Below the pieces are notes generated by a model. That model ran no database searches and was not told where the DNA came from. It saw only the letters and a list, made by a program, of their open reading frames with translations. DNA of 64,000 bases from Dicyema japonicum (taxonomy: Eukaryota; Animalia; Dicyemida), in the NCBI GenBank assembly GCA_011109175.1, contig RDEW01000010.1:62001-126000 (forward strand). The letters run 5' to 3'. Numbering within the stretch: position 1 is the first letter of the stretch; each line of letters starts with the position of its first letter. Positions 621-64,000 of the stretch are shown here, in pieces. Position numbers and translations under genes: made by a program.

Positions 621-1859
621 GTTATTATTAGGGCGTTTTTTTGACTTTATAAATCAGAAATTTTAACCTAAAAAATTGACTTTATTGACATTAAAATTTC
701 AAAATTTTGACCTTTTTTGACTTTATGATAAATTTGTCTAGAATAAAAATTTTAATACAAAAAATAATCAAATTCTTTATTAAAATACAGAACGTTTTCA
801 GGTTTAAAATTTAGGTCTTTAGATAGTAATTTTCCAAATAAAGAAAAACTTATCTCAACAAATGATGTTCTTCAGATAGACACTACATTCCTATGCGGCC
901 TTCGGCCACTGTTTTTCAGGTAGAAACAACGTTCATCAAACAAAGTATGATTTTTCTATTGGAAATGAGGTATTTTTAGTGAACAAATTTAGATACGAGT
1001 TTTAAAGGATTATGGGACAGATCCATCGCTAAGGTTGAGCAGATTTGAATCTCTATATGAAGAGCTAAGTAAAATTACTCAAATTTTGTCAAACAACCGA
1101 ATAGAGGTTTATTTAATTTTTTATCACAGATAGCAATATCAGGAGAATTGAAAATAGTCAACATGACTCGAGTCAAGAAAATATAGACTTAAGAAATACA
1201 TTCTTTGATTAGAAACCAATTAGTGTTGATTTGATGATAGGTGACATGTCGTAAATTCTTTGATTTTTGATAAGAAATGACATGTGAAATGTAATCAGCA
1301 GTGGATGGGTAACCCGTGCGGGACGCGACATATTAAAAATATTTTATTGGGATCAGAAATTCTAGTAATGAGTGTACATACTTCTGTCCCGAATATCAGT
1401 TTCGTCAATCATAACAAAATTTTTTAGATCTATATATATGACAATTCTGTCAAGCTGCTTCTGACCATCTGCCCACACATGAATCGAGAAAATAAGTTAG
1501 TTTTTTTAGTATTGACACCTGTAAAATAGTAATAAAAATAATAAACCTGCTAATTTGATATGCTTCTTAGACGATCTATGTCAATAAAAATTGTTTTTTT
1601 TCGCAGTTAAAATGTCCCATTAATTACAAAAGAGATTTCCTTGTGAATGATAGAAAATTCATTGGGATATTTTCTAAACAACAGACTTATTCTTTTCAAT
1701 TTCATTCTTGGTTGAACGCGGCATCACAGTAAATAATTATAATTGATACCACGCTAGTATTTTATGTAAAACTTGAAAAAAATAAAAAATCAATAATATT
1801 TTTGACTTTATTGACCTAAAAAAATTAATTTTTTCACCAGTGAATTGTATAAACGTATC

Positions 1860-2190
1860 CGTGTTTTTACTCAATCCTTTACGCTTTATCCAGTTTTCCT
1901 TTTAGGCACCGTAGTGTACTGTTTGAAATGTGTTTTCCGCATAATTACGTCTTGTTCATCTCCCAATAACGAGTTTCTTTACTTTTCTCCAATGTTCATC
2001 CAGCTTGGATTTTTTTCTGACTAGTTCAGTCAATTCTGTTTTCTTCCACATTTACATTTGAGGAACCACTAGGCAAGTTTATTTAACATCACCTCCAATA
2101 GGCTTTTAAGAGCATTCATGTCTAAAGAAATGAAATCCGTCATCCGCATAAGCCACCACATCGATTTTTGCTTCATAGTATAGTTTTAGC
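1860..2190 (-). mobile_element. RTE-like RT thumb-region fragment
   Basis: WFL..NVE(K)TELTELVRKKSKLDEHWRKVKKL motif, matching WFLTVNPDKTE...WRKCKKLGSLLG in the 25011-25640 ORF. Confidence 0.7.
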
Positions 2191-2199
2191 TCTTTCAAT

Positions 2200-3830
2200 G
2201 CAGCTTCCAAGTATTTGACAAATAGTATGGGAGATAACGGATCCCCTTGAGGTGTCCTGGATGTTGTTTCAAATGGTTTAGAGCATTGTCTCGTACCTTG
2301 ATCGATAGGTAAGTTTCTGATACCCCGACCATCAGGGTAGAAGATTCGTCAAGGAATTGTGTAAGGATATCCATCAATTTCTGATCGCGTTTTTGAATCT
2401 ATGAATAGTGGAACAACGCCATCTATGGCTCCACATTATGTCAGAAGTCGACTTTCCTTTTCGAAAATCGCTGTGGAACTCGGATAAAAATTGTTCCGTA
2501 CAAGACTTTGTAAAGTAATAATTGCAAGCACTTGCCGTATGCTGTTTATAAGAATTACTTGCCTGAGGTTCTCCACTTTTCCCTTAGCTTTGTTCTGTTT
2601 TGGACAGGGATCAGCATTTTTTGTCCAAAAGGTATTTGGTTGTTCGTTTTAAACATTCAATTGAAACGGTCCGCTATGAGGGTATGTAGGTTTTTCACTT
2701 CCATACTTTAGTAGCTCTGGTTCTAGCCCGTCTTGATCCCGGACTTTTGTTGTTTTTATGCTTAAAACAGGCTTGTCGCACTTCTGCGGGAGTTATTTCT
2801 ACCTCTAATTTCCTAGAATGAACAGTAAATGTTGCAATTCTGTTGCTGTCTGACTTAAACAATTTCCTGAAGTGATCGGAAATTAATTCTACAGCTTCTG
2901 CAGAGTCTGCTATCCGTCTGCCATTTTCGTCGTTCATGATTAGAGGTTGTCAGCTTTTGTGCCTACGGAGTAATCTGATCGCCTCATAGTACCTTCCAAT
3001 GTACTTCAGATCTCCAAGTGCCTTGATCTGTTCCTCAGTCTCGTTCCTTTACATAGTAGAAACGTATTTTCTGATTTTCTTCTTGATATTTGTTCTCTCA
3101 CGACTACGCTCCTCTTTGATATGCTTGTCTTCAGTGGTTAAGTATTGAAGCCAAATAGATTTTTGTTTCTTTACAAGGAGTGATATCTCTGTTGTCCCCC
3201 TTGGTGATGTGCTGACCATTTCTGTGTCTAGAAGCTGTTTGTCCGCTGCCCCTCGTATTGATTCTTGCAGTTGTTTCCAGAGTTTGGGGATTTGTTGATT
3301 TGTTTCCACACTGCTCAACTTCATGTCGAGGCATCTCCTTTTGTTGTAATGATAGTCCGTTTAGGTAAAGTTTTCTCCTGTTATGTGTATCGTGTGGCCC
3401 TTTGGTATTTATCTTCAATCCATCCACTGTGGGTGCGTACACGTTTATGATGGATAGTAAACTTTTAGATGGGTAGAGCTTGTTTATACAAATTCGGTCG
3501 TTTATGCTCCAATGGCCTCAGCTCTTTCTTTATCATAAATCCTTGGCCAAAGTGTCTGCTTCCACTTCGAAATGAAATGATAGACCAATAGTTCCTCTTC
3601 TAAACCATAGTGCAGTTTTGTTTCCTGAAAGCATCCAACTGTAACTTTGTATTTTATCAGATCGTCGCATAATGCTGTTCTTTTCCATGATTGTGTGAGC
3701 CCTCTGACATTAAATGTGAGTAGCGAGAAAAATGAATCCACGAGTTTCTTGTGCTTTTTAGACATATTGTAAAGAGCCACGTCACCAGCTCAACCAAAAA
3801 ACAGCTGGTCTATGTGAAAGGATTTCAGCT
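2200..3830 (-). mobile_element. 5' part of a degenerate RTE-like LINE (5'UTR, APE endonuclease, start of RT)
   Basis: ORF 3502-3780 has the APE N-terminus LLTFNVRGL...GCFQETKL. ORF 2695-2937 has the pre-RT NNKSPG motif. Multiple stops. Confidence 0.8.
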
Positions 3831-3849
3831 TTCATATTTCTTTCTTGTG

Positions 3850-5010
3850 CAGGACCAAATGCCCACGTTTCAGTACTTTGACTTGTATTAACATCGAGCT
3901 CTTTACGGCAAACCAAATTTTCTACATTGCTACGTTTACTAAAGTTTTCCTCCTTATGTCTTCGTTGTCACCGAGAAGGGAGCCCGCTTTTTGGTTTTAC
4001 GCCAATACTCCCCCGTCCTCGCCTTCTCCCTTCTGAATTCCGTTACTTCAGTTTTGTGGATTTACAGTTAAGAACCATTTGGCCAATCTGCCCAGAATTT
4101 CCTTCAATAAAACAGTGAATGCTTCACTGTCATTTGAAATTAAGTCCACGTCATCTGCGTATGCTATTGTGCTCTTCTTCTCTTCAAGGAGCAGCTCCAG
4201 GGCTGCCTGATTAAAAACAAAATAGGGGATAGTGGATCTCATTGGGGGTTACCAATATTGTCTCGAATTGTCTTGAGCAGGTTCCTCTGATCTTCACATT
4301 CAGATAAGTGTCCGTTAGGAGTGTCGTAATCAGTCTAACTGTGGAACTATCAAGGAAGCATTCAAGGACTTTTGACAATTTCCACTAATTAAACGAGTCT
4401 AAAGCTGATCTAAAAATGGACCATTCCGGACTTCTACTTGGGACTCCACACGACATCCGAGGTACCCTTACAGAATCTGATATAGTAAAAAGATAGATAT
4501 GAGTCTAACAACTCTCCATTCTCTATTGGATTATATTTTCAAATATTTTTCGAAGCAAAATAACTGATCTGAGGTTTTTTTCAGCCATTGGTTTGTGAGC
4601 CTTCTGAACAGATATCATGGTCCCCTCTCCGGGGTGCTGCCGGTTCTGTACATTCCGTTTAAGATGCGAGCGATGCTTTGATGCAGTTTTTTGTGTTCCA
4701 TATTTTAAGAATTGGCCATTGAGACCGTTCGGGTACGGATTATTGTCATTTTTTAATTTTGAGCTTACTAACTGTAATTCTTGTGGAATTATTTCCTCTT
4801 GAAGTTCGCCCCCTTCTGAAGCAGTTCCAATGCTACCGTGATCGTTCGATTTAAATAAATTTTCGAAGTGGTCAGCAATAATTTCCGCCACTTCCAATTT
4901 ATCCACAAATTGTCTCCCTTGCAAAGTTACTGACTGTTTTAATACTTTGAATCTAATTTGTCTAAAGATCATAGAACCTTCCGTTGTCCTTGAAGCTTTC
5001 AATTACTTTA
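3850..5010 (-). mobile_element. Degenerate RTE-like RT fragment
   Basis: IAYADDVDLIS and RLAKWFLTVNP in ORF 4048-4242; pre-RT region in ORF 4523-5002. Confidence 0.8.
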
Positions 5011-5336
5011 ATCTGGTCGATTATCTAATTCTTTGTTCTCAAACGTACGGCTTTTCTTATTTTTTTGTTATTTACTCCTTTGTCTTTTGTGTGTTGGTCA
5101 TCTGTGTCTAGGTACTGTATCCATATTTTCTGTTCTACAAATCTGGAACGGTAAGTCCATCAATATCCCTCGGGCTCTGTCTAGGTATTCTCTGAACTCC
5201 TAGCCTATATTGACACTAAAATTATAAATCGAAATTTTATTATTTCTAATAAATTAATTAAATTAAATTAATATTTAAACTTAAAAGGCGGTCAATTTAA
5301 TTGAACTTCAAGTAATTTATGTTGTTTATTTGTTAG

Positions 5337-8300
5337 ATGCGGGGGACTGTCAAATATCTAGAAATAGAAAATTTCAAATCTTTTAAAGGAAAAAATTTCA
5401 TTGGTCCGTTTAAAAACTTTACAGCCATAATTGGTCCGAATGGTTCAGGAAAATCAAATTTAATGGATGCAATCAGTTTTGTACTAGGTGAACGAGCATC
5501 CACTCTTCGTGTGAGAAAATTGAGTGTACAATTATATGTAACTCATAGGAACTGATTCACGGTGCACAAATATCTTGTCCAGTTTCTAATCGTTCCTCGG
5601 TCAGAATGATGTTTGACTATGACAGCGTAGAGACTCTCTTTGAGCGAACAATAGTGGAGAACTCCTCTTACTACAAGATAAATGAAAATTCCGTTTCTTG
5701 GATAATATATTCCGATACTCTTTTTCAGGTCGGAATTCCACCCAAAAATAAGAACTTTTTGGTTTTCCAAGGGAGTGTAGAGAGTATAGCAATGAAAAGT
5801 GCTAAGGAAAGGACTGAGATATTCGAGAATATAAGCGGGTAAGTCAGTATAATAAAAAAAGTTCCCGAGAATTGAAAGACAGCTACGAGTCAGCAAAACT
5901 AACAATGGTGAAGGCAAATCAGGAAGCACAAACTCATTATTTGAAGAAACAACTGATTACTGGTGAACGTAGAGATGCCATTATGAAAAAAGGGGAAAAT
6001 GAACGCTATAGACAACTCTTATATGATCACGTGGCACTTTGTTTTTAATATTTAGGATTTAAAGAGAGTTCAAATCCATTTGCTCAGACTTTATATTAAC
6101 GAAAGATCTATTCAGGAGTTAGATGGTGAGTTTGCTGAAAGAAATGCAAAGCTGGAAAATATTACACATGAAATAGCTCAGGCTGAAGAATTGATTTTGT
6201 CTAAAAAGAAAGATTATGCTAAACTTGGAAGAGATGTTGATAAGATCGAGCAAAATAGGAGAGAATTGGTGAATTATTAATTTATTGGTTGAAGAAGTTG
6301 GATTTACAAAAGTTGAGACCCGAATTTCTTCAATCGAACGAACAGAGCAATCATATGGAGAAAAAATTGGAGATGGCTCAGTTTGATTGGTTAATTTTAT
6401 TGAAGGAAAAATCTGAAAGCTGCGGAAACACAAGAGAGAACTAATCGAGATGAAATTTTTGGATTAGAAGAGGCTTTGAGAAATGTGGATTTGGCCCGCC
6501 AAAACTGGAAAGATTGTTTGCTCGAAAAGGGCTTTGATTTGGAGGATTCACAGATGAAGGAATACAGGAGATTACGGAAACAGGCAGATCGAGAAACTTC
6601 AGATATTTGTAGACAACAAGAGTCTGTGATGATAGAACAGAGGATGAACGAGGCTGCTTTATTAGAATTTACTAACCGAAAAAATGACATTGAGCATCGA
6701 CTTGAGCAAAAAAAGGGGTCACTTAACAACAACATTGCTCGTATTGAAAAATTAAACGAATTCTTGGAGTTTATGTACTTTATATTTGTTTAGAACATCC
6801 AGAAAACTTTTGGAGGACGAGAAAAGGAAACTAGTCGAACTATCCACTTTTATTGAATGTGTTCAGTCTAATATTACGAAAATTAAAGGAGAAATGGCAA
6901 ATATTGACGATGAAATAAGTCAGGCTAATGTAAGTCTATTATTCGAGCATAGACTGAATTTAATGATTCTTCCAATTTACGGAAACGTACAGAAATCGTA
7001 CAAAATTTAAAGAAACAGTTTCACGTAGTTGTAAGAGTTATTTTGACACAACAGTATGGGAGAATAGCGGATTTATGTCAAGCCACACATAAACGTTACC
7101 AACTCTCCGTCACCAAGGTTTTTGGGGGGCATATGGACTCTATCGTATGTGACACAATGCAGACTGCACGAGACTGCATTGTATATCTGAAAGAGACAAT
7201 GCTTGGACCAGAGACGTTTATTCCTCTCGATTCTGTGACGACAGAACAAATCAACGAAAAATTAAGGTTTCGCTTTTATTTAATAGTAGGGACATTAAGA
7301 GCCCCAAAAATGTTAAATTATTATTTGATGTTCTCCGATTCAGCCCTTCAGAGTTGAGAAAGGCAATTATTTTTGTCTGTGGAAATACTTTGGTATGTGA
7401 AACAACGGAAGATGCTAGAACGGTAGCTTTTGATCTTGGGGATCGAAAGAAGGCTGTATCGTTGGATGGAACTCTTTATCAAAAGTCGGGGTTTATTTCT
7501 GGAGGAGCCAGGTTCGTAAAACGTCTCATTGAAGCAATTTAAGAGCAAAGGTGAGGAGATGGGATGAGAGGGAACTCACAAGGCTTAGAGAGAAGAGAGC
7601 CAAACTTACAGAAGACTTGAATTTACAAATATCTGAAAATCAAAAGGAACTTTACCTTTATAACTTGCGGATGCAAATCCATGGATTGGAAACTAGAATT
7701 AAATTCTCCCTTACTGAGAAAGATACCATGGTACTTGTTTTTATCACTGAAGGAGAACAAACTTATCCATCACAATAAAGTAGATTTAACTTCACTAGAG
7801 TGTGAATTGAACAGCTTAAAGGTGTTTTTATATTAATTCAGCCTGCTTTGAATGATCTACAGGGTCGTGTTGATTCTAGTAAAGAAGTATTGGTGAATCT
7901 TCAAAGGAGGAAAAACGAGATTGACGATAGAGTATTCTCCAACTTTTGTCTTAACTTAGGGATTGAAAACATTCGGTTATATTTATAGTGATTGCAGACA
8001 ATTTGAGGAGGAAGAACTTGTGGCGTATAAAGAGAGAATGGCAAAAAATGTGGAATTTGATAACCAAAGAGTCGCATCTTAAATCAACTTGAATGTGGGA
8101 AAGCAAGGGATACAAAAGGTTATTGCATGATTAATGTAGATAATATTACAAAATGGAGAAGAATTGCAGCAGACAATCAGTCGGAATTAGATGAACTAAA
8201 AATGAAAGAGAGTGAACTGGCAAAGGTTTGTAAATTATGTTATTGTAGACGCTTGATGATATTGAAAAGAATATTGATGGTCTTGGAGTTGTAAAAAATA

Positions 8301-9459
8301 AAACTATTTCTGACATGGAAGCTCTTGATTGCGAAATTATAAATCTCTCAAGGACTAAGGACCAATTTAAGAGTGATTTGGATGAACTGCAAAGGATGAC
8401 CATCAATGCGGAGAATAGTTGTGATCAGAAACGATACGATCGACATTCCTTAATAAAGTCATGCAAACATGCAAGAATTGAGATTCCTTTGGTTAGTGGA
8501 AGTATTGATGATTTTACCTCTGTTCCAATCGATGACTCACAGCCTTCTTCACTCAACACATTTATAACTCCTGAAGTACTTGCCATATACGAACGAGAAA
8601 GAAAAATTGTAATTGACTATTCGTCATTAACTGAGGAACTAAAAGCAGTTACTGTTAATTCAGAGGATGATGTGGTTGACAAACTGCAAACGGAATTAGA
8701 TGAACTTGCTTCCAAGTTGGATAGTTTCGTTAATCCGAATATGAGGGCAGGAGAACGGTTTTAGTGGTACTTATTAATAGACTGGATGAACTGAGTGAAC
8801 GCTTTGTTGCGGCTGTATCTGAATTCGATAATGCAAATGATAAGACACAAAAGGCTAGGGAAGAGTTTGAAAAAATAAAAAAGAAACGACTAGAGTTGTT
8901 TCAGACTTTCTTTTCTCACGTGTCAGCTGTTATCGATACTATTTATAAAGTACTAGTTTGACAAATTGAAGGAACTTTCAGGGAATATTGGTGCCCAGGC
9001 AATATTAAGCCCAAAGAACACAAAGGAGCCTTACCTTGAAGGAATCAGTTTTAATTGTGTCGCCCCTGGTAAACGATACAGAGCAATAGACAATATGTCT
9101 GGTGGAGAGAAAACTCTCGCTGCCTTAGCTTTATTGTTCTCAATGCATTGCTATAAACCCTCTCCATTCTTTGTGCTTGATGAAATAGATTCTGCCCTCG
9201 ATAATACTAATATGAATAAAGTTTAGCCTTACTATAATTTTAGTTGGCTTCTTATATTCGCAAACAATCCCTTGATAGTTTTCAATGTATTGTAATCTCC
9301 CTTAAGGAAGAGATGTACAATCGTGCAGATTCTTTGATTGGAATTTATCCTCAGGTCACTAAAAGTCATGATTCTTAGACGAGTGAAATATGTATGCGAA
9401 GTAACTTACTCACTCTTGACCTAACATCATATAGGGATGACTTTGTTGATGATAATTAG
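5337..9459 (+). CDS. SMC1: Structural maintenance of chromosomes protein 1 (cohesin SMC1); 20 exons, 19 introns of 20-26 nt; one apparent frameshift near 8070
   Basis: Walker [22 protein letters not shown], hinge YGRIADLCQ...[16 protein letters not shown], signature [15 protein letters not shown] and Walker [13 protein letters not shown]. Removing GT-AG micro-introns (e.g. 5526-5548, 5839-5861, 6031-6055, 7822-7841) restores the frame. Confidence 0.97.
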
Positions 9460-9525
9460 TTTGTTTTTCCTAAATGTTGGATTTCTGAATATTAATAAAT
9501 ATTATTGTAAGATTATAGTTTTTTA

Positions 9526-10395
9526 TTAATTTGTCTCATCAGATGATGAATCTGAGTTTTGCACTAAAAATACCATAAAATTTTTCTTTGAGATATCCCA
9601 CTTGATTTGACTGAGGAAATGAGAATTCAGATAATTTTCCGTTTTTTATTTTTCCATTCCGGTATCCTGCATTCATCTTTTTCTGTCGAGCTCTTGCATT
9701 TTGAAACCAAACCTTTAAATTTAAGTTTAAAGTCGACCTGAGATACCCTTTTTTGAAGGTTTACCTCCTGCGAAATCCTTTCCAGTTCCTGACTGTCTGG
9801 ATTTGGGTCGTGTTCAAAGTAGTATTGGAGCGTTTGGATTTGATCCTCAGAAAATGTGGTTCTGATCCGTTTATGTCTATTTCTAATATCTTGTTGTTAT
9901 CATGTAAATTACAATGACTGGAACCATTTTCTTCAAAATAGTCACTTTTACACAGGACTTTGTTATCTTTGAAATAATACTCCTCCCCCGTTGATAGTTG
10001 TCTTTTACATATCTCACAGGAAAAGCAAGCCAAATGGTAAAGGTTATCTTCAGCCTTGCGGACCCAATCTCCCGCTTGTAGTTCCCGTCCACATTTTGAA
10101 CACTTTTGAACTTCAAATCTAAAATAATGTAAGCATATTACAATTTGTAGTAATCATCCCAACAGTAAATTTTATTATTTGTAATGTAACATTTGGTAGA
10201 GTTTTCAAGTGAACGTTTGCACTTGTGACAGCACAGACAACTCCCATGCCAATATTCATAATTGACTTTCATTTTGTAATTTTCCATAATAAATTGTCCA
10301 CATCCCTTGCAGATGTTTTCCATATAATTAATTATGCATCCACGTCCGAAACAAAAATGTGAAAATATCGTTAATAAATAGCCAAATGACGCCAA
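9526..10395 (-). CDS. Awh: LIM-homeodomain transcription factor, Arrowhead/Lhx6/8 family (start may be 10323)
   Basis: Two LIM domains (CKGCGQFI...WHGSCLCCHKC; CSKCGRELQAGDWVRKAEDNLYHLACFSCEICKRQLSTGEEY) and a spliced homeodomain KRIRTTFSEDQIQTLQYYFEHDPNPDSQELERISQEVNLQKRVSQ|VWFQNARARQKK. Introns are 23, 23, 25 and probably 22 nt. Confidence 0.9.
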
Positions 10396-55817: not shown

Positions 55818-58765
55818 ATAATTTCCACGTCGTTGTCGTCGTTAATATATACAGTTCTCTCTCCTATTATCTATTCATGTCTGTTTTTTATGATGTACTA
55901 CACGAAGACACCTCATGCAAAGGGTGCAGAGTATCCAATTCTCGCAAGTGCGGGATTCGATGTTCTGTATGTGTTGGTTACTTCCACATAGGTTGTGAAA
56001 AACTATCCAAGAAAATTGCTCGATCACTTCCCTCGTGGTCGTGCCATCTGGAACTCACTAAAATTGAACCTCATGATCATTTTGTGTCATCTTCTGTATC
56101 AGACCTTCTGGAAGCCATGTCTCCGGAAGATTTTCTGGTTTTATTATCAAACACGCGACAAAGGAGGATTATCCCTGTCAGGATCCCCAAGGCTTCCGGA
56201 TCTCAATTGCTTCTGCCCTTTTTCTTGCATTGAGAAAGCTGTGTCCAATGGCTCGAAAAAGGATTGGATGGTTCTTTTCTCTTTCCCTGTCCTGGCTATG
56301 GGGTTAGAGCGTAAGCCTGCCCCATCTTCTCGGAAACCCTCTCTATCCCATGTCCTGAAGAAGCGCGTGAGTGCCTTTATGGATTCATGTGAGTCCTGGC
56401 TGAAGAATTATTTGTTTCCCCAGTTGATTACTTCCCAAAGTCCAACAATCCAGTATGGCTCCTGAGAGGCTTCGCTCTCGTGTCAGGAGGAAATTAATGG
56501 AGGACGATCTTACTGCTGCAGTTCGAACTGTTTGTACGGATTCTGACCCGGTGAAAGCCACTCAGGAGACACTCTGTATATTGGGACAGAAACATCCTCC
56601 AGAACCAGAAGACTTTTGTAAACCTGTTCGTCCAGAACAATCTATGCATGATATTTCCACTTCAGCCATTTACAACGCTCTTCGTTCTTTCCGAAGAAGT
56701 AGCAGTGGAGGAGTTGACGGTCTCAAACCTGGCCATCTGTCAGACTTGGTGTCCCATTCTATCGGCAGCCCTGGATCGCTACTCTTGGAGCGAACCCGGG
56801 ATCTCGTAGCTCGCATGCTTTCCGGAAACGTTTCCGATTTTGGTCGGAATCTCCTCTTTTCGGCGAATCTAACGGGCCTTGGAAAGAAAGATGGTGGTAT
56901 TCGCCCCATTGCAATTGGAAACGTATTTCGACGTTTATCCGCAAAAATGGCTTGTCGTTTTGTTATCTCCCGAATTTCAGCCGAATTTTGTCCTTCGCAG
57001 CTTGGTGTCGGAATCAATGGCGGCTGTGAAGCTGGGATCCACGCAGTGAGAGAATTTGCGTCACAATCAGCTGAATTGAATGTTGAGGACAGAGTTTTAT
57101 TCAAATTGGACCTCCGGAATGCCTTCAATTCAGTCAGAAGGGACACCGTCCTTGATACCTGTAGGAGGAGGATTCCTCAGATTTATCCCTTTGTATATCT
57201 CGCGTATTCGGATCCATCCCCTCTTGTTTTTGGCAGTGCAATTATTTCATCCGGATCCGGAGTTCAACAGGGGGACCCGCTCGGTCCTCTTCTATTTTCC
57301 TTGTCTATTGACCATATTGCCCAGGACCGTTGCACTCCACTAAACGTCTGGTATCTGGACGATTGTATTCTCGGTGGAAGTCCCGATGATATTCTCTCCA
57401 AAGTTGCATCGATCAGAAGTTTGTGTGGAAAAATCGGTCTGGATTTTAACAATGAAAAGTGCGAAGCAATTAATCTGAATTTGAGTTCCGATTCATTCTA
57501 CCTTTTTCATCCCAGGGGTTAGGGAGACTCATATTGATTCTCTCGACTTCCTTGGGTGTGGGATTTTGGTAAACCGGGTAAGGGAGTTATTGGAAGGCAA
57601 GAGGACTAATTTACGTCAGTATGCCGACAGGATGAGTTTTTTGGACCGTCATGTCGCCTTTTTTATGCTGAAGAATTGTCTCCTTCTCCCAAAACTCCTT
57701 TTTATTCTACGGGGATCCCCATGCTACGCCGAAAAAGACCTTCTATCGTTAATTGATATGGATATCCGGTCAACGATGGGGTCCATTCTTAATGTTCGTT
57801 TTGATGATTTCGGATGGGCGCCTCTTTATTTTCGTTCGGCTCGTCAAGGCGTTTAGTGGATACGGTCCTTCACTCTACTTCCGGAGTAAACGTACCGCTG
57901 ACGCCGTCGGGAGCCTGGGATGAATGGATGAATTTGTACCTGAATGCTCCGGCCAATTGTGATAAGCAAAAGTCCTATTTGTTTTGTGTCTTCGAAAAGA
58001 AGAAAAAGTCCATTGAAAAGACGGAAGATGTAAGAAGGCTTGCCTGCCTCAAAACAGCCAGTTGTTACTCGACGGGGGACTGGATGAACGCTTATCCATC
58101 TGCCGAAATTGGAAACCTGTTGGATGATGAGGCTGTGAGAATAGCTACCTCGCTTCGTCTTGGTCTTAATTGTGTGCCGAAAGAAAATGCCGCTGTGGAC
58201 GTTGGATCGATCCTTTTGGTTATCATCCCTTGTCATGCAAGATGAGTGTGGGTCGTTTCCCCAGGCACTCCTGTCTTAACATGACATTAAAGAATTCCCT
58301 TGCCTCTGATGGACACCATTGCCTGTTAGAACCTGCTGGTCTTTCCTGAAACGATGGAAAACGCCCTGATGGGATGACGACTTTTCCATTCGCCAACGGA
58401 CGAAACCTGATCTGCGACGTGTGTTGATACTGATTTCCCGTCTAATTTGGTTGCTTCTGCTTCAGACCCAGGACATGCTTCAAAGCAGGCCGAGGAACGA
58501 AAGATGAGGAAGTACCAGAGAATTTCGGAGGAGTATCTTTTTGTTCCATTCGCTGTGGAAACGTCAGGAATCCTTGGCCCCCAAGCAGATGAGTTGGTTC
58601 GTAAGATCGGCTCCATGATTCAAGCTGTGACCAAGGATCCGCGAGAGACCGGTTGGTTCCGAGAACGTATATCGTTGGCTATTGTTAGGGGAAATAGCAT
58701 GGCCATTCAGATGCCTTAATTTAATTTTTATTCATTTTAAAATATTAATAAAGTTTTTTTTTTTA
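55818..58765 (+). mobile_element. Full-length (inactivated) CRE-like REL retrotransposon: PHD-like finger, RT, zinc finger, restriction-like endonuclease
   Basis: 12-bp TSD AATTTAGCAATT (55806-55817, 58766-58777). Motifs RIPKAS, GGVDGLKPGHL, GGIRPIAIGNVFRRL, DLRNAFNSVRRD, GVQQGDPLGPLLF, WYLDD, DGKRPDG and FVPFAVETSG...ISLAIVRGN. Confidence 0.93.
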
Positions 58766-59259
58766 AATTTAGCAATTGTTCAATTTTTTTGGTTATCATG
58801 GAAATACATTGTGATCCTTTTGGTTTCATCAATGACTTTTGTAACCATATGTTTTGGAGTGATAAGTTTGGCTTATCACCCCGGAGCGAAGATGTGCTCG
58901 GGTTCTCATGCTATACGACAATAAATAAAGATATCTTTGAATAACTACCGCAATTCCTCTTTGAATATGGGTTTGATTTGAAAAAGCACTGTGGTTTAAC
59001 GACATGCTGGTGTTGCTACCAATTTTCAAGCTGAAATAGACAAAAATCATTGCTTGTTTTGGTTTGACATATGTGTGAACAACTTTTTTCATTTATGAAA
59101 TTAAAAAAAACTGCTCAAGAACAATAATTAAATTTTATCCGCTTTAATAAAAGTTGGAACTAAGCGAATAGCTGAGTCCGACATTTCAAAAATTGTATCC
59201 AAAACAGATGTCAACCTCTGGAAGTAGCAAAAATTAAAGAGTGGTGATTAAATAATTAA

Positions 59260-61140
59260 GTTTCTCTTATTTAATAAATAAAATTACAAAATTAATTACT
59301 AAAACGAGTAAATTAACTAATTAAGCTAATTTTAATCCAGATCCCTCTACTTTTAGAAGAATGCGCCATCAACTTCATGTTATTCCCCATCTCCACATCT
59401 GAGTAAGTCGAAATATCTTTGTTAGAGTGAACTGGGCTATCCTCATGGCATGCCAGTTCCACAAGTTGTGAGGTAGTTGAGGCGTACTTTTCATCTTATA
59501 CCTTCATCCAATGCTTATGTTCAATGAGCAACTTTCGATCGTTCTTTTCAGCACAATCGATTGGATGTAAGTCCTCGTTGATTCTTCAGATAATTCATCC
59601 ATATGATTCTTGAAGCATCTTTAGACAACTCCATCCCATGTCAACACCACGGGAATAATCTTCATTCATAGAGCAGCGAAAGTTCATTTGCAAACAAGTC
59701 ATATTTGTTAAGTTTTCTTCAACTTGCTTTAGTCGGTCTTATGAGGTAATGCTTACTTCAATTAAGATTATTTCCTTCTTTATTTTATCGTAAACAAAAA
59801 TATCAGGTTTATTGAATTGGACTTTTGTTTCTGTCATAATCGACATGTCAACAGTGATTTCGACATTTTGAGTCGTCAATATTGACTGCACCGAATATCC
59901 TTTCATTTTGATTCCATAAACTCTATGAAGATGAAAATGGATACACTTTACCACTTCATTATGTCTTCGGAGATAATCACTGTTTAGCATTTTACCACAC
60001 TGAGTGGCCCAACAGTTTCTTGCTTTTTTGCAATGGTTGCATTCCTATATTGCATAATGACCCCGTGCGAAAAACAAATTTCTATCTTGCAGAAAACAGT
60101 ACAATGCTTCGCTCCATGGGCCGTTATTTTTCTTTGGATAACCATTCTGAGTAAGTAGATAGGTCGACATTTGCTTCATCCATACATTTGAACATAATGG
60201 ACTATATTGTTTTGCAATAAATTTTATTTAATAAATATTTTCTCTAAGTGTCCTTGAGGGACTTAATATCCATGCTTTTCCTGTCGGCAATAACATATTT
60301 AAAGGTAAAAAATCCTGCGATTGTAGCCAGGTGCCATTTTTTTGTTTTTATTAGTCGCAGAATCCCCGACCTTCGCAAACATACAGTCGACTGTTTTTCA
60401 AAACTTTTAAGGAATTGAAGGAATATTAATTCGCCATTAAACGAAATCGATTAAGCCCTCTTAGAAAATTCTTCCTGTCCAAATACAGCCTCTCTTTATT
60501 TGCATGTTTGGGGTGCAACTTTAGTGACGTAAGCAGTTAGCTTATTTGTTGGTCAAAATCAACAAATTCATAAGGTTCAATAATAATTAGTCCAATATAA
60601 TAGTTAGGGAAATTGCGTATTCGTTTATTGCACGAAATAAGTTCGCAGAATTTAACTTAGTTTTTGAAAGCATAATTATTATTAACATTTAAAAGTATGA
60701 ACTCTATAATTTTTTTTGATAACATTACTTCCCTCGTCTTCAAAATCACCCAAATATCGATATCCATTAACTCCTTCCAAAATCTCACAGCATGATAACG
60801 ATTTAACATTAAAGGATGACTTTTCCGAATTCATCTCCAAGCCGGCAACATGAAAGAAATTGCAAACAACTATAATCATTTTAATGATAGTATCTTCATT
60901 TAGCCCAAATATCTTTGGATCGTCAATGAACAACGAATGATTTGTAGAATAAGTCAGAGTATTAGGATCTTTCTGATTAATGTGGAGTCTTGGAAACATA
61001 GAGTTAAGGGTCCTGCTCAAGGGTTTCATTGCCATAACAAATAGTTGAGAGGATAATGAATATCCTTGCAGAATTCGTACAGCTTTACATAACCAATTCT
61101 TCTTCCATCTAAGTGGAGATTTACAGTCCACTTCTTAATT
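59260..61140 (-). mobile_element. 3' part of an R4/Dong-like REL retrotransposon (degenerate)
   Basis: RILQGYSLSSQLFV, TNHSLFIDD, GLEMNSEKS, YRYLG, ERLYL, RRHNEVVKCIH and NKPDIFVYDK...LIEV (PD..D/E-K nuclease). Confidence 0.88.
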
Positions 61141-63237
61141 ATGTATTTACAAAGTTAACAATCCAACGGGGTATACCTGAACAGTCCAAACTTCTTGATT
61201 ATGTTATTTACAAAGTTAACAATCCAACGGGGTATACCTGAACAGTCCAAACTTCTTGATTATGTTATTTACAAAGTTAACAATCCAACGGGGTATACCT
61301 GAACAGTCCAAACTTCTTGATTATGTTATTTACAAAGTTAACAATCCAACGGGGTATACCTGAACAGTCCAAACTTCTTGATTATGTTATTTACAAAGTT
61401 AACAATCACACGGGGTATACCTGAACAGTCCAAACTTCTTGATTATGTTATTTACAAAGTTAACAATCCAACAGGGTATACCTGAACAGTCCAAACTTCT
61501 TGATTATGTTATTTACAAAGTTAACAATCCAACGGGGTATACCTGAACAGTCCAAACTTCTTGATTATGTTATTTACAAAGTTAACAATCCAACGGGGTA
61601 TACCTGAACAGTCCAAACTTCTTGATTATGTTATTTACAAAGTTAACAATCCAACGGGGTATACCTGAACAGTCCAAACTTTTGATTATGTTATTTACAA
61701 AGTTAACAATCCAACAGGGTATACCTGAACAGTCCAAACTTCTTGATTATGTTATTTACAAAGTTAACAATCCAACGGGGTATACCTGAACAGTTCAAAC
61801 TTCTTGATTATGTTATTTACAAAGTTAACAATCCAACGGGGTATACCTGAACAGTCCAAACTTCTTGATTATGTTATTTACAAAGTTAACAATCCAACGG
61901 GTATACCTGAACAGTCCAAACTTCTTGATTATGTTATTTACAAAGTTAACAATCCAACGGGGTATACCTGAACAGTCCAAACTTCTTGATTATGTTATTT
62001 ACAAAGTTAACAATCCAACAGGGTATACCTGAACAGTCCAAACTTCTTGATTATGTTATTTACAAAGTTAACAATCCAACGGGTATACCTGAACAGTCCA
62101 AACTTCTTGATTATGTTATTTACAAAGTTAACAATCCAACAGGGTATACCTGAACAGTCCAAACTTCTTGATTATGTTATTTACAAAGTTAACAATCCAA
62201 CGGGGTATACCTGAACAGTCCAAACTTCTTGATTATGTTATTTACAAAGTTAACAATCCAACGGGGTATACCTGAACAGTCCAAACTTCTTGATTATGTT
62301 ATTTACAAAGTTAACAATCCAACGGGGTATACCTGAACAGTTCAAACTTCTTGATTATGTTATTTACAAAGTTAACAATCCAACGGGGTATACCTGAACA
62401 GTCCAAACTTCTTGATTATGTTATTTACAAAGTTAACAATCCAACGGGGTATACCTGAACAGTCCAAACTTCTTGATTATGTTATTTACAAAGTTAACAA
62501 TCCAACGGGGTATACCTGAACAGTCCAAACTTCTTGATTATGTTATTTACAAAGTTAACAATCCAACAGGGTATACCTGAACAGTCCAAACTTCTTGATT
62601 ATGTTATTTACAAAGTTAACAATCCAACGGGGTATACCTGAACAGTCCAAACTTCTTGATTATGTTATTTACAAAGTTAACAATCCAACGGGGTATACCT
62701 GAACAGTCCAAACTTCTTGATTATGTTATTTACAAAGTTAACAATCCAACGGGGTATACCTGAACAGTCCAAACTTCTTGATTATGTTATTTACAAAGTT
62801 AACAATCCAACGGGTATACCTGAACAGTCCAAACTTCTTGATTATGTTATTTACAAAGTTAACAATCCAACGGGGTATACCTGAACAGTTCAAACTTCTT
62901 GATTATGTTATTTACAAAGTTAACAATCCAACGGGGTATACCTGAACAGTCCAAACTTCTTGATTATGTTATTTACAAAGTTAACAATCCAACGGGGTAT
63001 ACCTGAACAGTCCAAACTTCTTGATTATGTTATTTACAAAGTTAACAATCCAACGGGTATACCTGAACAGTCCAAACTTCTTGATTATGTTATTTACAAA
63101 GTTAACAATCCAACGGGGTATACCTGAACAGCCAAACTTGATTATGTTACAAAGTTAACAAATCCAACGGGGTATACCTGAACAGTCCAAACTTCTTGAT
63201 TATGTTATTTACAAAGTTAACAATCCAACGGGGTATA
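61123..63237. repeat. Tandem satellite of 61-bp units (~34-35 copies) with a 9-unit higher-order structure
   Basis: Consensus ACAGTCCAAACTTCTTGATTATGTTATTTACAAAGTTAACAATCCAACGGGGTATACCTGA; no spacers, so it is not a CRISPR array. Confidence 0.98.
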
Positions 63238-63339
63238 ATGGACATGTACAACACACAACAACTTCCAACAGTATAATAAATAAATATTTTCTTTAAAAAA
63301 TAATATATCACAAACTATTTTCTCTTGAGAAATTTTTAT

Positions 63340-63378
63340 AAATGCGGCCCTCATAGCGAAATGAGTTTGACACCCGTG
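63340..63378 (-). mobile_element. Single hAT (Charlie/Buster-like) terminus
   Basis: The reverse complement CACGGGTGTCAAACTCATTTCGCTATGAGGGCCGCAT resembles CAGGGGTGTCAAACTC...GGGCCGCA hAT ends. No partner end was found. Confidence 0.5.
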
Positions 63379-64000
63379 ATTTAGATCAAGTCTGGACATT
63401 TCTACTCAGAAATGTCCTTCGTTAGAAAATCCGAATTTCTAATACCTCCCAATTCTGTCATTCCATCCATGCTCAGGAAAAAAAATAAGAGAATTTTTCA
63501 TTCACCATAAACCAGATATTCCATGCTCAACCTTTGAACAAACAACCAATCATATTATTAACCCGGGCTTACAATCTTTGGTTGTTTTTCTTATGGTTAG
63601 GTAGTGGCGTCCCTAGTGGGTATAGGGCCAACAGATCCAAGTCATGGAGTTCACATTATTAAATTATACTAACTTTTTTCTCGATTTTTTTCATCATAGA
63701 CAAGATCGACTCCTAGTGATCACTGTGTCTATTGACAGCACTGAAGACTTTGAACGTACTTATTTTAATCAATGGCAGATGCGTGTTCGCTGTGAATTTC
63801 CTTATCGCTCTTCGTGAAGCGCGGTCAATGACCTTCTTTTTGTTATTACGACGATGTCACGCTTGCGCAGAATAACGTGGCGACAGTTGTTTTTTCCTTG
63901 CTGCAGTCTTCTTTTTGATTTCTTGTGTGTATTAATTTCCTCTACTTTTATCCGACAAATAAAGTGAATATAACCAAGCGGGGCTCAAAATTGCCGCGAG

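Follow-up and report, generated by a model that had tools for sequence, protein, structure and literature searches.

A tandem array of about 35 units, each of 61 bp, in the genome of the dicyemid Dicyema japonicum, a parasite of octopuses, was found to consist of reverse transcriptase (RT) coding sequence from a LINE-like retrotransposon copy. It probably arose by duplication at the DNA level between two short direct repeats that flanked the later unit in this old host copy, followed by unequal exchange. The array lies at 61123-63237 of the window, which is the whole stretch of 64,000 bp analysed here (contig RDEW01000010.1, positions 62,001 to 126,000 of the forward strand; window coordinates are used unless another locus is named). 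Genome-wide statements refer to the assembly that we searched, with 67,542,437 bases in 377 pieces. That assembly has been described as 67.5 Mb in 377 scaffolds, with 49% repeats and 1.24% heterozygosity, made from pooled material by merging Platanus contigs of Illumina reads with Falcon contigs of PacBio RS II reads (PMC6736024).

Tandem Repeats Finder (TRF) reported this array as the sole large one in the window (2,115 bp; period 61, 34.9 copies, 97% matches, 1% indels), and we split it at the recurring GAACAG into a table of 35 units. The sense of the retrotransposon runs along the minus strand, and the parts of the array are as follows.

61123..63237, minus strand (element sense): tandem array of 35 units with a 61-bp consensus (TRF, unit table, list of open reading frames).
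61123..61180, minus strand: terminal unit 1, 58 bp, adjoining the remaining element (unit table, alignment).
61123..61130, minus strand: second (downstream) copy of the 8-bp direct repeat of the ancestral state, reading TGGACTGT in sense with the codons W-T-V (alignment of 19 paralogs, 75 genomic copies).
61181..63127, minus strand: homogeneous interior units 2-33 (unit table, junction search).
63128..63237, minus strand: decayed edge on the 5' side, with unit 34 and partial unit 35 (unit table).

The interior units 2-33 are 60-61 bp long, with a mean pairwise difference of 1.0-1.3%, and 19 of the 32 match the consensus exactly. Unit 1 is four edits away from the consensus and retains the ancestral boundary AAGAAGTGGACTGT|AAATCTCC. 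Its shortfall in length (58 vs 61 bp) is made up of the two T's found at the other junctions and of a private 1-bp deletion, next to which it has one private substitution, and it also carries the copy-specific substitutions of the array. At the opposite edge, unit 34 (54 bp) is nine edits from the consensus and has four indels, and unit 35 is a partial unit of 56 bp that lacks the first five bases in sense and abuts unrelated DNA at 63238. Changes from G4 to G3 recur among the units (four such variants). As it stands the array is non-coding, the longest open reading frame (ORF) in the ORF list being 55 amino acids, because 61 is not divisible by three.

All junctions between units read CAAGAAGTTTGGACTGTTCAGG, composed of AAGAAG-T-TT-GGACTGT-TCAGG, which is the downstream flank of the unit joined to the upstream repeat TTGGACTGT. 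This junction occurred 32 times in the 67.5-Mb assembly, every time inside the array, and a query of four units gave full matches that were likewise confined to it. Elsewhere the monomer matched single units only, at more than 40 loci on other contigs (about 68 bp at 88-92% identity), which, starting at the unit, remained colinear with the minus strand of the window over as much as 1.6-1.9 kb. With a junction unique to one locus of 2.1 kb in 67.5 Mb, the array is thus, by size and distribution and as assembled, a minisatellite; the term satellite DNA, used in the initial annotation of this stretch, does not fit a single locus of 2,115 bp.

The same annotation had proposed that the monomer is an internal RT segment, and this was borne out. 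On the minus strand the unit is RT coding sequence (residues LDCSGIPRWIVNFV..KKW) and corresponds to residues 197-217 of the RT ORF of an intact paralog (LDCSGIPRWIVNFVKTIVKKW), located between motif A (VDVKKAFDSV) and motif B (GILQGDSLSP). Translated on the minus strand, the sequence gives ...SRSLDCSGIPRWIVNFVNNIIKKFGLF... in the array and ...YIIKKWTVNLHLDGRRIGYVKL past the last unit. Of the peptides that had been named, SRSLDCSGIPRWIVNFVNNI and IKKWTVNLHLDGRRIG do share one frame on this strand, whereas RILQGYSLSSQLF sits in another, so that one frameshift separates RILQGYSLSSQLF from IKKWTVNLHLDGRRIG.

The ancestral state could be read from other copies of the family. Each of the 19 paralogs that were aligned has ...TTTCATGTA TTGGACTG[T/C] TCAGGAATACC...GTCAAGAAG TGGACTGT AAATCTCC... 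in sense, with exactly one unit, flanked by TGGACTG[T/C] upstream and TGGACTGT downstream at a spacing of 59 bp. The direct repeat is accordingly 8 bp long (TGGACTGT), or 7 bp in the TGC variant. In these paralogs its upstream member is preceded by CATGTA and the downstream one by CAAGAAG, and the same word encodes L-D-C upstream and W-T-V downstream. Genome-wide, the upstream boundary was present in 62 copies (about one-third with TGT, about one-half with TGC and the remainder with GGATTGT) and the downstream boundary in 75, including the window copy. Intact copies thus hold a single unit between two microhomologies, as the initial annotation had anticipated, although not in the form that it had given. 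The 14-16-bp echo described there (AAGAAGTTTGGACTGT / AAGAAGTGGACTGT) sets a junction within the array against its terminal boundary, and the upstream partner in fact follows TTTCATGTA, not AAGAAG. Nor is AAGAAGTGGACTGT (reverse complement, 61123-61136) a free-standing echo, as it is the end of the complete, divergent 58-bp terminal unit.

By chance, an element as long as this one would hold only about 0.5 pairs of at least 8 bp at a spacing of 57-63 bp, and the coincidence of the repeat pair with the ends of the unit is therefore meaningful. That such a repeat seeded slippage or unequal exchange had been suggested before, and the suggestion stands insofar as a short direct repeat does flank the unit. 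It fails for a clean in-register slip, however, since the spacing of the repeats is 59 bp and the period of the array is 61 bp, with two extra T's at the junction (AAGAAGT+TT+GGACTGT), and no in-register 59-bp junction or dimer was found in the whole assembly. Slippage assisted by a hairpin was also considered and was rejected, as neither the ancestral segment nor a pair of units folded better, as single-stranded DNA, than shuffled sequences did (z 0.1-0.6).

The remainder of the host copy adjoins the array at unit 1, and comprises the following features.

59311..61122, minus strand: rest of the host retrotransposon copy, with the latter half of the RT, then the C-terminal domain, and at the 3' end an AT-rich, (TTA)n-like tail (paralog comparison).
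60682..61131, minus strand: longest surviving RT reading frame of the copy, with motif B as 'RILQGYSLSS' and motif C as 'FIDD'; it matches Pfam RVT_1 over the curated cutoff (E 1.3e-08).

Pairwise comparison of family copies showed that no scored paralog, out of more than 500 candidate places, exceeds 86% identity to the window copy, which carries many stops, whereas the paralogs are mutually 94-98% alike. Compared with three paralogs, it has 133 private substitutions (about 8% of about 1,600 scored coding positions), spread nearly uniformly over the codon positions (53:32:48), and 24 indels, mostly not multiples of three. The low identity to paralogs, the even spread over codon positions and the frame-breaking indels together indicate that the host copy is old and has been decaying neutrally. 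A copy on C328 was considered as a closer relative because of one apparent shared variant, but it was 84% identical to the window copy and 94% to L031, and was rejected.

Seen against the decay of its host, the array is young. Interior units lie only about 1% apart, which indicates that the insertion is far older than the expansion, or at least than the last homogenisation. The consensus unit is four substitutions away from the family and unit 1 has the same four, as would be expected had they arisen before amplification. The array is not newborn, however, as its edge units have decayed (by four and nine edits), and it has thus existed for a while. Recent amplification, as stated in the initial annotation, is therefore an apt description relative to the host copy (about 1% vs about 8% and 24 indels), whereas an array caught 'at birth' is not.

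A pattern of longer period was also visible among the units, with a T variant in units 12, 21 and 30 and an A variant in units 6, 15 and 24, thus recurring every nine units. When homopolymer deletions were ignored, the mean distance between units was 0.35 at a lag of nine, as compared to 0.56-0.76 at other lags (permutation p 0.0015, or 0.008 after correction for the 15 lags tried, as based on the unit order of the assembly). Recurrence of diagnostic variants is a trait of the higher-order repeats of young tandem arrays, but the present array has about three such periods, with other variants breaking the pattern and with modest support (p ~0.008).

From these observations we infer the following course of events. 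An old, 5'-incomplete copy of a LINE-like non-long terminal repeat (non-LTR) retrotransposon would have been decaying at the site, of a family whose RT sequence holds the 8-bp word TGGACTGT twice, 59 bp apart. Late in the life of this copy, the segment between and including both words would have been duplicated at the DNA level, by replication slippage or by unequal sister-chromatid exchange, as in the models of Haber and Louis and of Taylor and Breden. Since the two T's cannot come from exchange within the repeat, either the first junction would have been formed two bases out of register, or two T's would have been gained by insertion before the expansion, in either case giving the 61-bp unit. 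With at least two copies present, ordinary unequal exchange could have expanded and homogenised the interior to the approximately 35 assembled units, growing partly in blocks of about nine, and both edge units, left out of this exchange, would have gone on decaying. What lay upstream of the array would have been deleted, or would have been just a few bases long after 5' truncation. The outcome would be a single-locus, non-coding minisatellite with no evident function. Both the nine-unit recurrence of variants and the decayed edges fit such stepwise growth by multi-unit unequal exchange.

Several observations weigh against this account. The causal role given to the direct repeat rests on one positional coincidence, because pairs of 8 bp at 20-200 bp spacing are at chance level in the element (12 per element vs 12.3 in shuffles) and because no duplication at this repeat pair was found in the 74 other copies; with one of 75 copies amplified, the pair is no hot spot. 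The period of 61 bp, where exchange within the 8-bp repeat predicts 59 bp, requires an extra event or an out-of-register join. As for timing, the divergence of the window copy may in part reflect a distinct source lineage rather than age. An origin at insertion would likewise put the array at the extreme 5' end of the copy and leave a partial unit next to unique DNA, as is seen here. Finally, the length of the array and the order of its units are those given by the hybrid Illumina and PacBio RS II assembly, and errors in the consensus of long reads may account for the four G4-to-G3 variants and for the irregular unit 34.

The main rival to duplication within the resident copy is that the array dates from the insertion or from before it, having been made either through jumping of the RT or in an array-bearing source element that was then 5'-truncated within its array, with homogenisation coming later. 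We consider this unlikely, and somewhat less likely still the version in which the RT of the retrotransposon wrote the array by itself, jumping repeatedly from the upstream TGGACTGT to the downstream one during target-primed reverse transcription, adding two bases per jump and then falling off inside a unit. What speaks for an origin at insertion, besides the position of the array, is that the non-LTR copies of the family are 5'-truncated at many different points, and that the two extra bases per junction could be nucleotides added at the template jump. RTs of the R2 type may add extra nucleotides at such jumps. It has moreover been suggested that some tandem repeats in transposable elements (TEs) are triggered during retrotransposition (PMC3389668).

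The surroundings on the 5' side bear on the same question. No 5' part of the element was found within 10.7 kb beyond the array using sensitive blastn and tblastn, and its absence past the array, as given in the initial annotation, thus stands. The first 347 bp beyond the array are single-copy, and a different dispersed repeat begins at about 63585.

63238..63584, no strand assigned: single-copy DNA flanking the array at its 5' end in sense, without homology to the 5' part of the element (homology search).

The junctions of the array contain TTGGACTGTTCAGG, and the progenitor copy must therefore once have extended at least 14 bp further in the 5' direction than the present end of the array. Either this stretch of at least 14 bp has since been lost, or the array is older than the insertion. 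As for a target-site duplication, both flanks are AT-rich and share a weak TTATTTATTA-like similarity that could not be told apart from chance. Against an origin at insertion it counts that sustained homogenisation would be needed to keep interior differences at about 1% in a host copy that has gathered 24 indels and about 8% private substitutions, and that unit 1, although clearly outside homogenisation, still has the copy-specific substitutions of the array. Furthermore, neither the junction nor a dimer was present in any other copy among at least 75, giving no array-bearing source and no sign of RT stutter, and the nine-unit periodicity of variants points to multi-unit exchanges of DNA.

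It is also improbable that the array is largely a product of the assembly, with a wrong copy number or unit order, be it inflated or collapsed, and a higher-order pattern without meaning. The manner of assembly described above, with Platanus and Falcon contigs merged from pooled and 1.24% heterozygous material (PMC6736024), makes this conceivable, as does the resemblance of the recurrent G4-to-G3 changes and of the unit with four indels to long-read consensus errors. An artefact was in fact encountered in the same family at L023:1584-1857 (C310), where RT sequence appears as a 137-bp segment in two copies. This was considered as a second birth event and rejected, because the two copies meet precisely at an NN; probably two contigs overlap there without having been merged across the scaffold gap, and other small tandem duplications of the assembly call for caution. 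The window, on the other hand, has no runs of N and is free of gaps, and a 32-fold junction is impossible to obtain from scaffold overlap, so that errors would alter the count of units and not the existence of the array. For evidence at the level of reads we used short Logan contigs of one 2019 sample, which is probably the source of the assembly, aligned to the left junction, none of which span the array. Among them, a 90-bp contig matched the unit-to-unit join exactly, and another covered the variant units 5-6, thereby giving independent short-read support for the join.

A short-read contig of generic array sequence (61146-61235) had a depth of about 2073 in run X3, as compared to about 16-22 for contigs of the host copy, and its 31-mers occurred 26 times in the assembly; the depth is two to four times that predicted from 26 copies, although contig depth is an unsuitable measure of copy number. 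From this hint, which also speaks for errors in the assembled copy number, the array may be under-assembled two- to four-fold, or further arrays may be unassembled. The same hint would agree with a true satellite that acts in a centromere or in heterochromatin and is much longer in the genome or lies at unassembled loci, the array being its seed or the tip of it that was assembled, and satellites derived from LINE ORF2 are indeed known, such as PROsat, Pvc20 and HinfI/CR1 (PMC9659126). We nevertheless hold this to be very improbable, since what was assembled is one 2.1-kb locus, bordered by unique DNA and by the host element, and its contig is free of gaps.

The family to which the host copy belongs was characterized through a reference element of at least 3.57 kb (L031:5659-9224), ending in a (TTA)n-like 3' tail. 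Its intact RT ORF (L031:6680-7792) matches Pfam RVT_1 with E 3.3e-30 and is followed by a C-terminal ORF of 399 amino acids (L031:7950-9149). The best solved relatives of the paralog RT were human L1 ORF2p (E 7e-20) and R2 proteins (6e-12). The copies at L031, L032 and L033 have a common end at the (TTA)n-like tail and differing starts, and several family copies begin 20-55 bp upstream of the unit. Shared 3' ends with variable 5' truncation are a hallmark of non-LTR retrotransposons, and by its sequence the host copy is thus placed in a LINE-like family of that class. In the C-terminal ORF we noted by eye a CCHC motif, CNHCKKSKKTVDHLATQC, and a PD...ExK-like motif, KPDIFVYD...IEVGIT...EKLHKY, which together suggest a putative R2/CRE-type element with a restriction-like endonuclease. 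Neither this ORF nor the two N-terminal ORFs had a Pfam match, and no match to an AP-endonuclease was found. For the C-terminal ORF a search of PDB gave no sequence match, its Atlas neighbours were labelled zf-RVT/RVT_1 only, and a single-sequence AlphaFold model had a pLDDT of 34 and was unusable.

Some further observations were made in the family and around the window copy. Family copies carry a (TTA)n/(ATT)n tail instead of poly(A) (window 59200-59330, L031:9200-9230, L032:9215-9240 and L033:9280-9310), reminiscent of elements that target TAA-type microsatellites. At L036 (C325:73000-82999), from about 3508 to 10000, at least three copies of an internal 2.3-kb segment of the family, corresponding to positions ~685-3028 of the L031 element, lie head to tail with a period of about 2.36 kb; their 35-bp joints are identical and contain no Ns. 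As these copies lack the 3' end of the element, this looks like DNA-level tandem duplication and not repeated insertion, and would constitute a second, macro-scale tandem repeat arising from the same retrotransposon family. Just upstream of the reference element (L031:1615-5212; C179:647614-651211), long ORFs were seen that by eye resemble a Helitron-type Rep/helicase with PIF1-like motifs. Near the array itself, a minus-strand element to the right of the window (L034:149-1721; C2:126149-127721) was considered as the missing 5' part and rejected, being another non-LTR element, only distantly related. It has the same orientation and lies about 0.9-2.5 kb beyond the array, with 31-35% amino acid identity to the RT and C-terminal domain of the family. 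The host copy is also placed among at least three other dispersed repeat families (window 58750-59272 and 63585-64000), each with at least 150 candidate genomic places, which fits the published repeat content of 49%.

Origins of this kind are well established. Jurka and Gentles reportedly described the same direct-repeat origin of minisatellites for Alu. Of human minisatellites and satellites, 23% were found to be TE-derived (Ahmed & Liang 2012; PMC3389668), and two classical models are available: that of Haber and Louis (1998), in which a minisatellite is born between flanking direct repeats of 5-10 bp, and the slipped-strand model of Taylor and Breden (2000), with noncontiguous repeats and an incomplete terminal unit (PMC3389668). 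The present array resembles such minisatellites in having a 7-8-bp direct repeat around the future unit in the ancestral single-copy sequence, a short terminal unit, a location inside a TE copy and growth by local duplication of units. Unit 1, at 58 vs 61 bp, may correspond to the incomplete terminal unit of Taylor and Breden; two of the bases that it lacks are the junction T's and the third is a private deletion, and the other end of the array is truncated and decayed. The array differs from the in-register expectation of Haber and Louis by a unit 2 bp over the 59-bp spacing, and from the published cases in that its upstream flank is lost and that the ancestral state is given by 74 paralogs of the same genome rather than by an orthologous locus. 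It shares with satellites derived from LINE ORF2 coding sequence, as reviewed for PROsat in Phodopus, Pvc20 in Phoca and HinfI/CR1 in chicken (PMC9659126), a monomer from non-LTR RT/ORF2 coding sequence that no longer codes for protein, but those satellites are abundant and multi-locus or chromosome-scale, whereas the present array is one 2.1-kb locus with 35 assembled units.

As TE-derived minisatellites, ORF2-derived satellites and seeding by direct repeats are all established already, the array opens no new question. The two classical models do leave the majority of TE-derived tandem repeats unexplained (PMC3389668), and template jumping by the RT, if true here, would be an RT-driven route to the birth of a minisatellite, distinct from replication slippage, that could help to explain repeats for which those models do not account. 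For the standard model the array adds a caveat, in that its period is two bases off the spacing of the repeats. It is the first described case in a dicyemid, and it displays a textbook process with its before and after in one genome, as 74 paralogs are unduplicated and one decayed copy is amplified. The source segment, the breakpoints at base level and the relative timing are thereby fixed, as can seldom be done for a tandem repeat.

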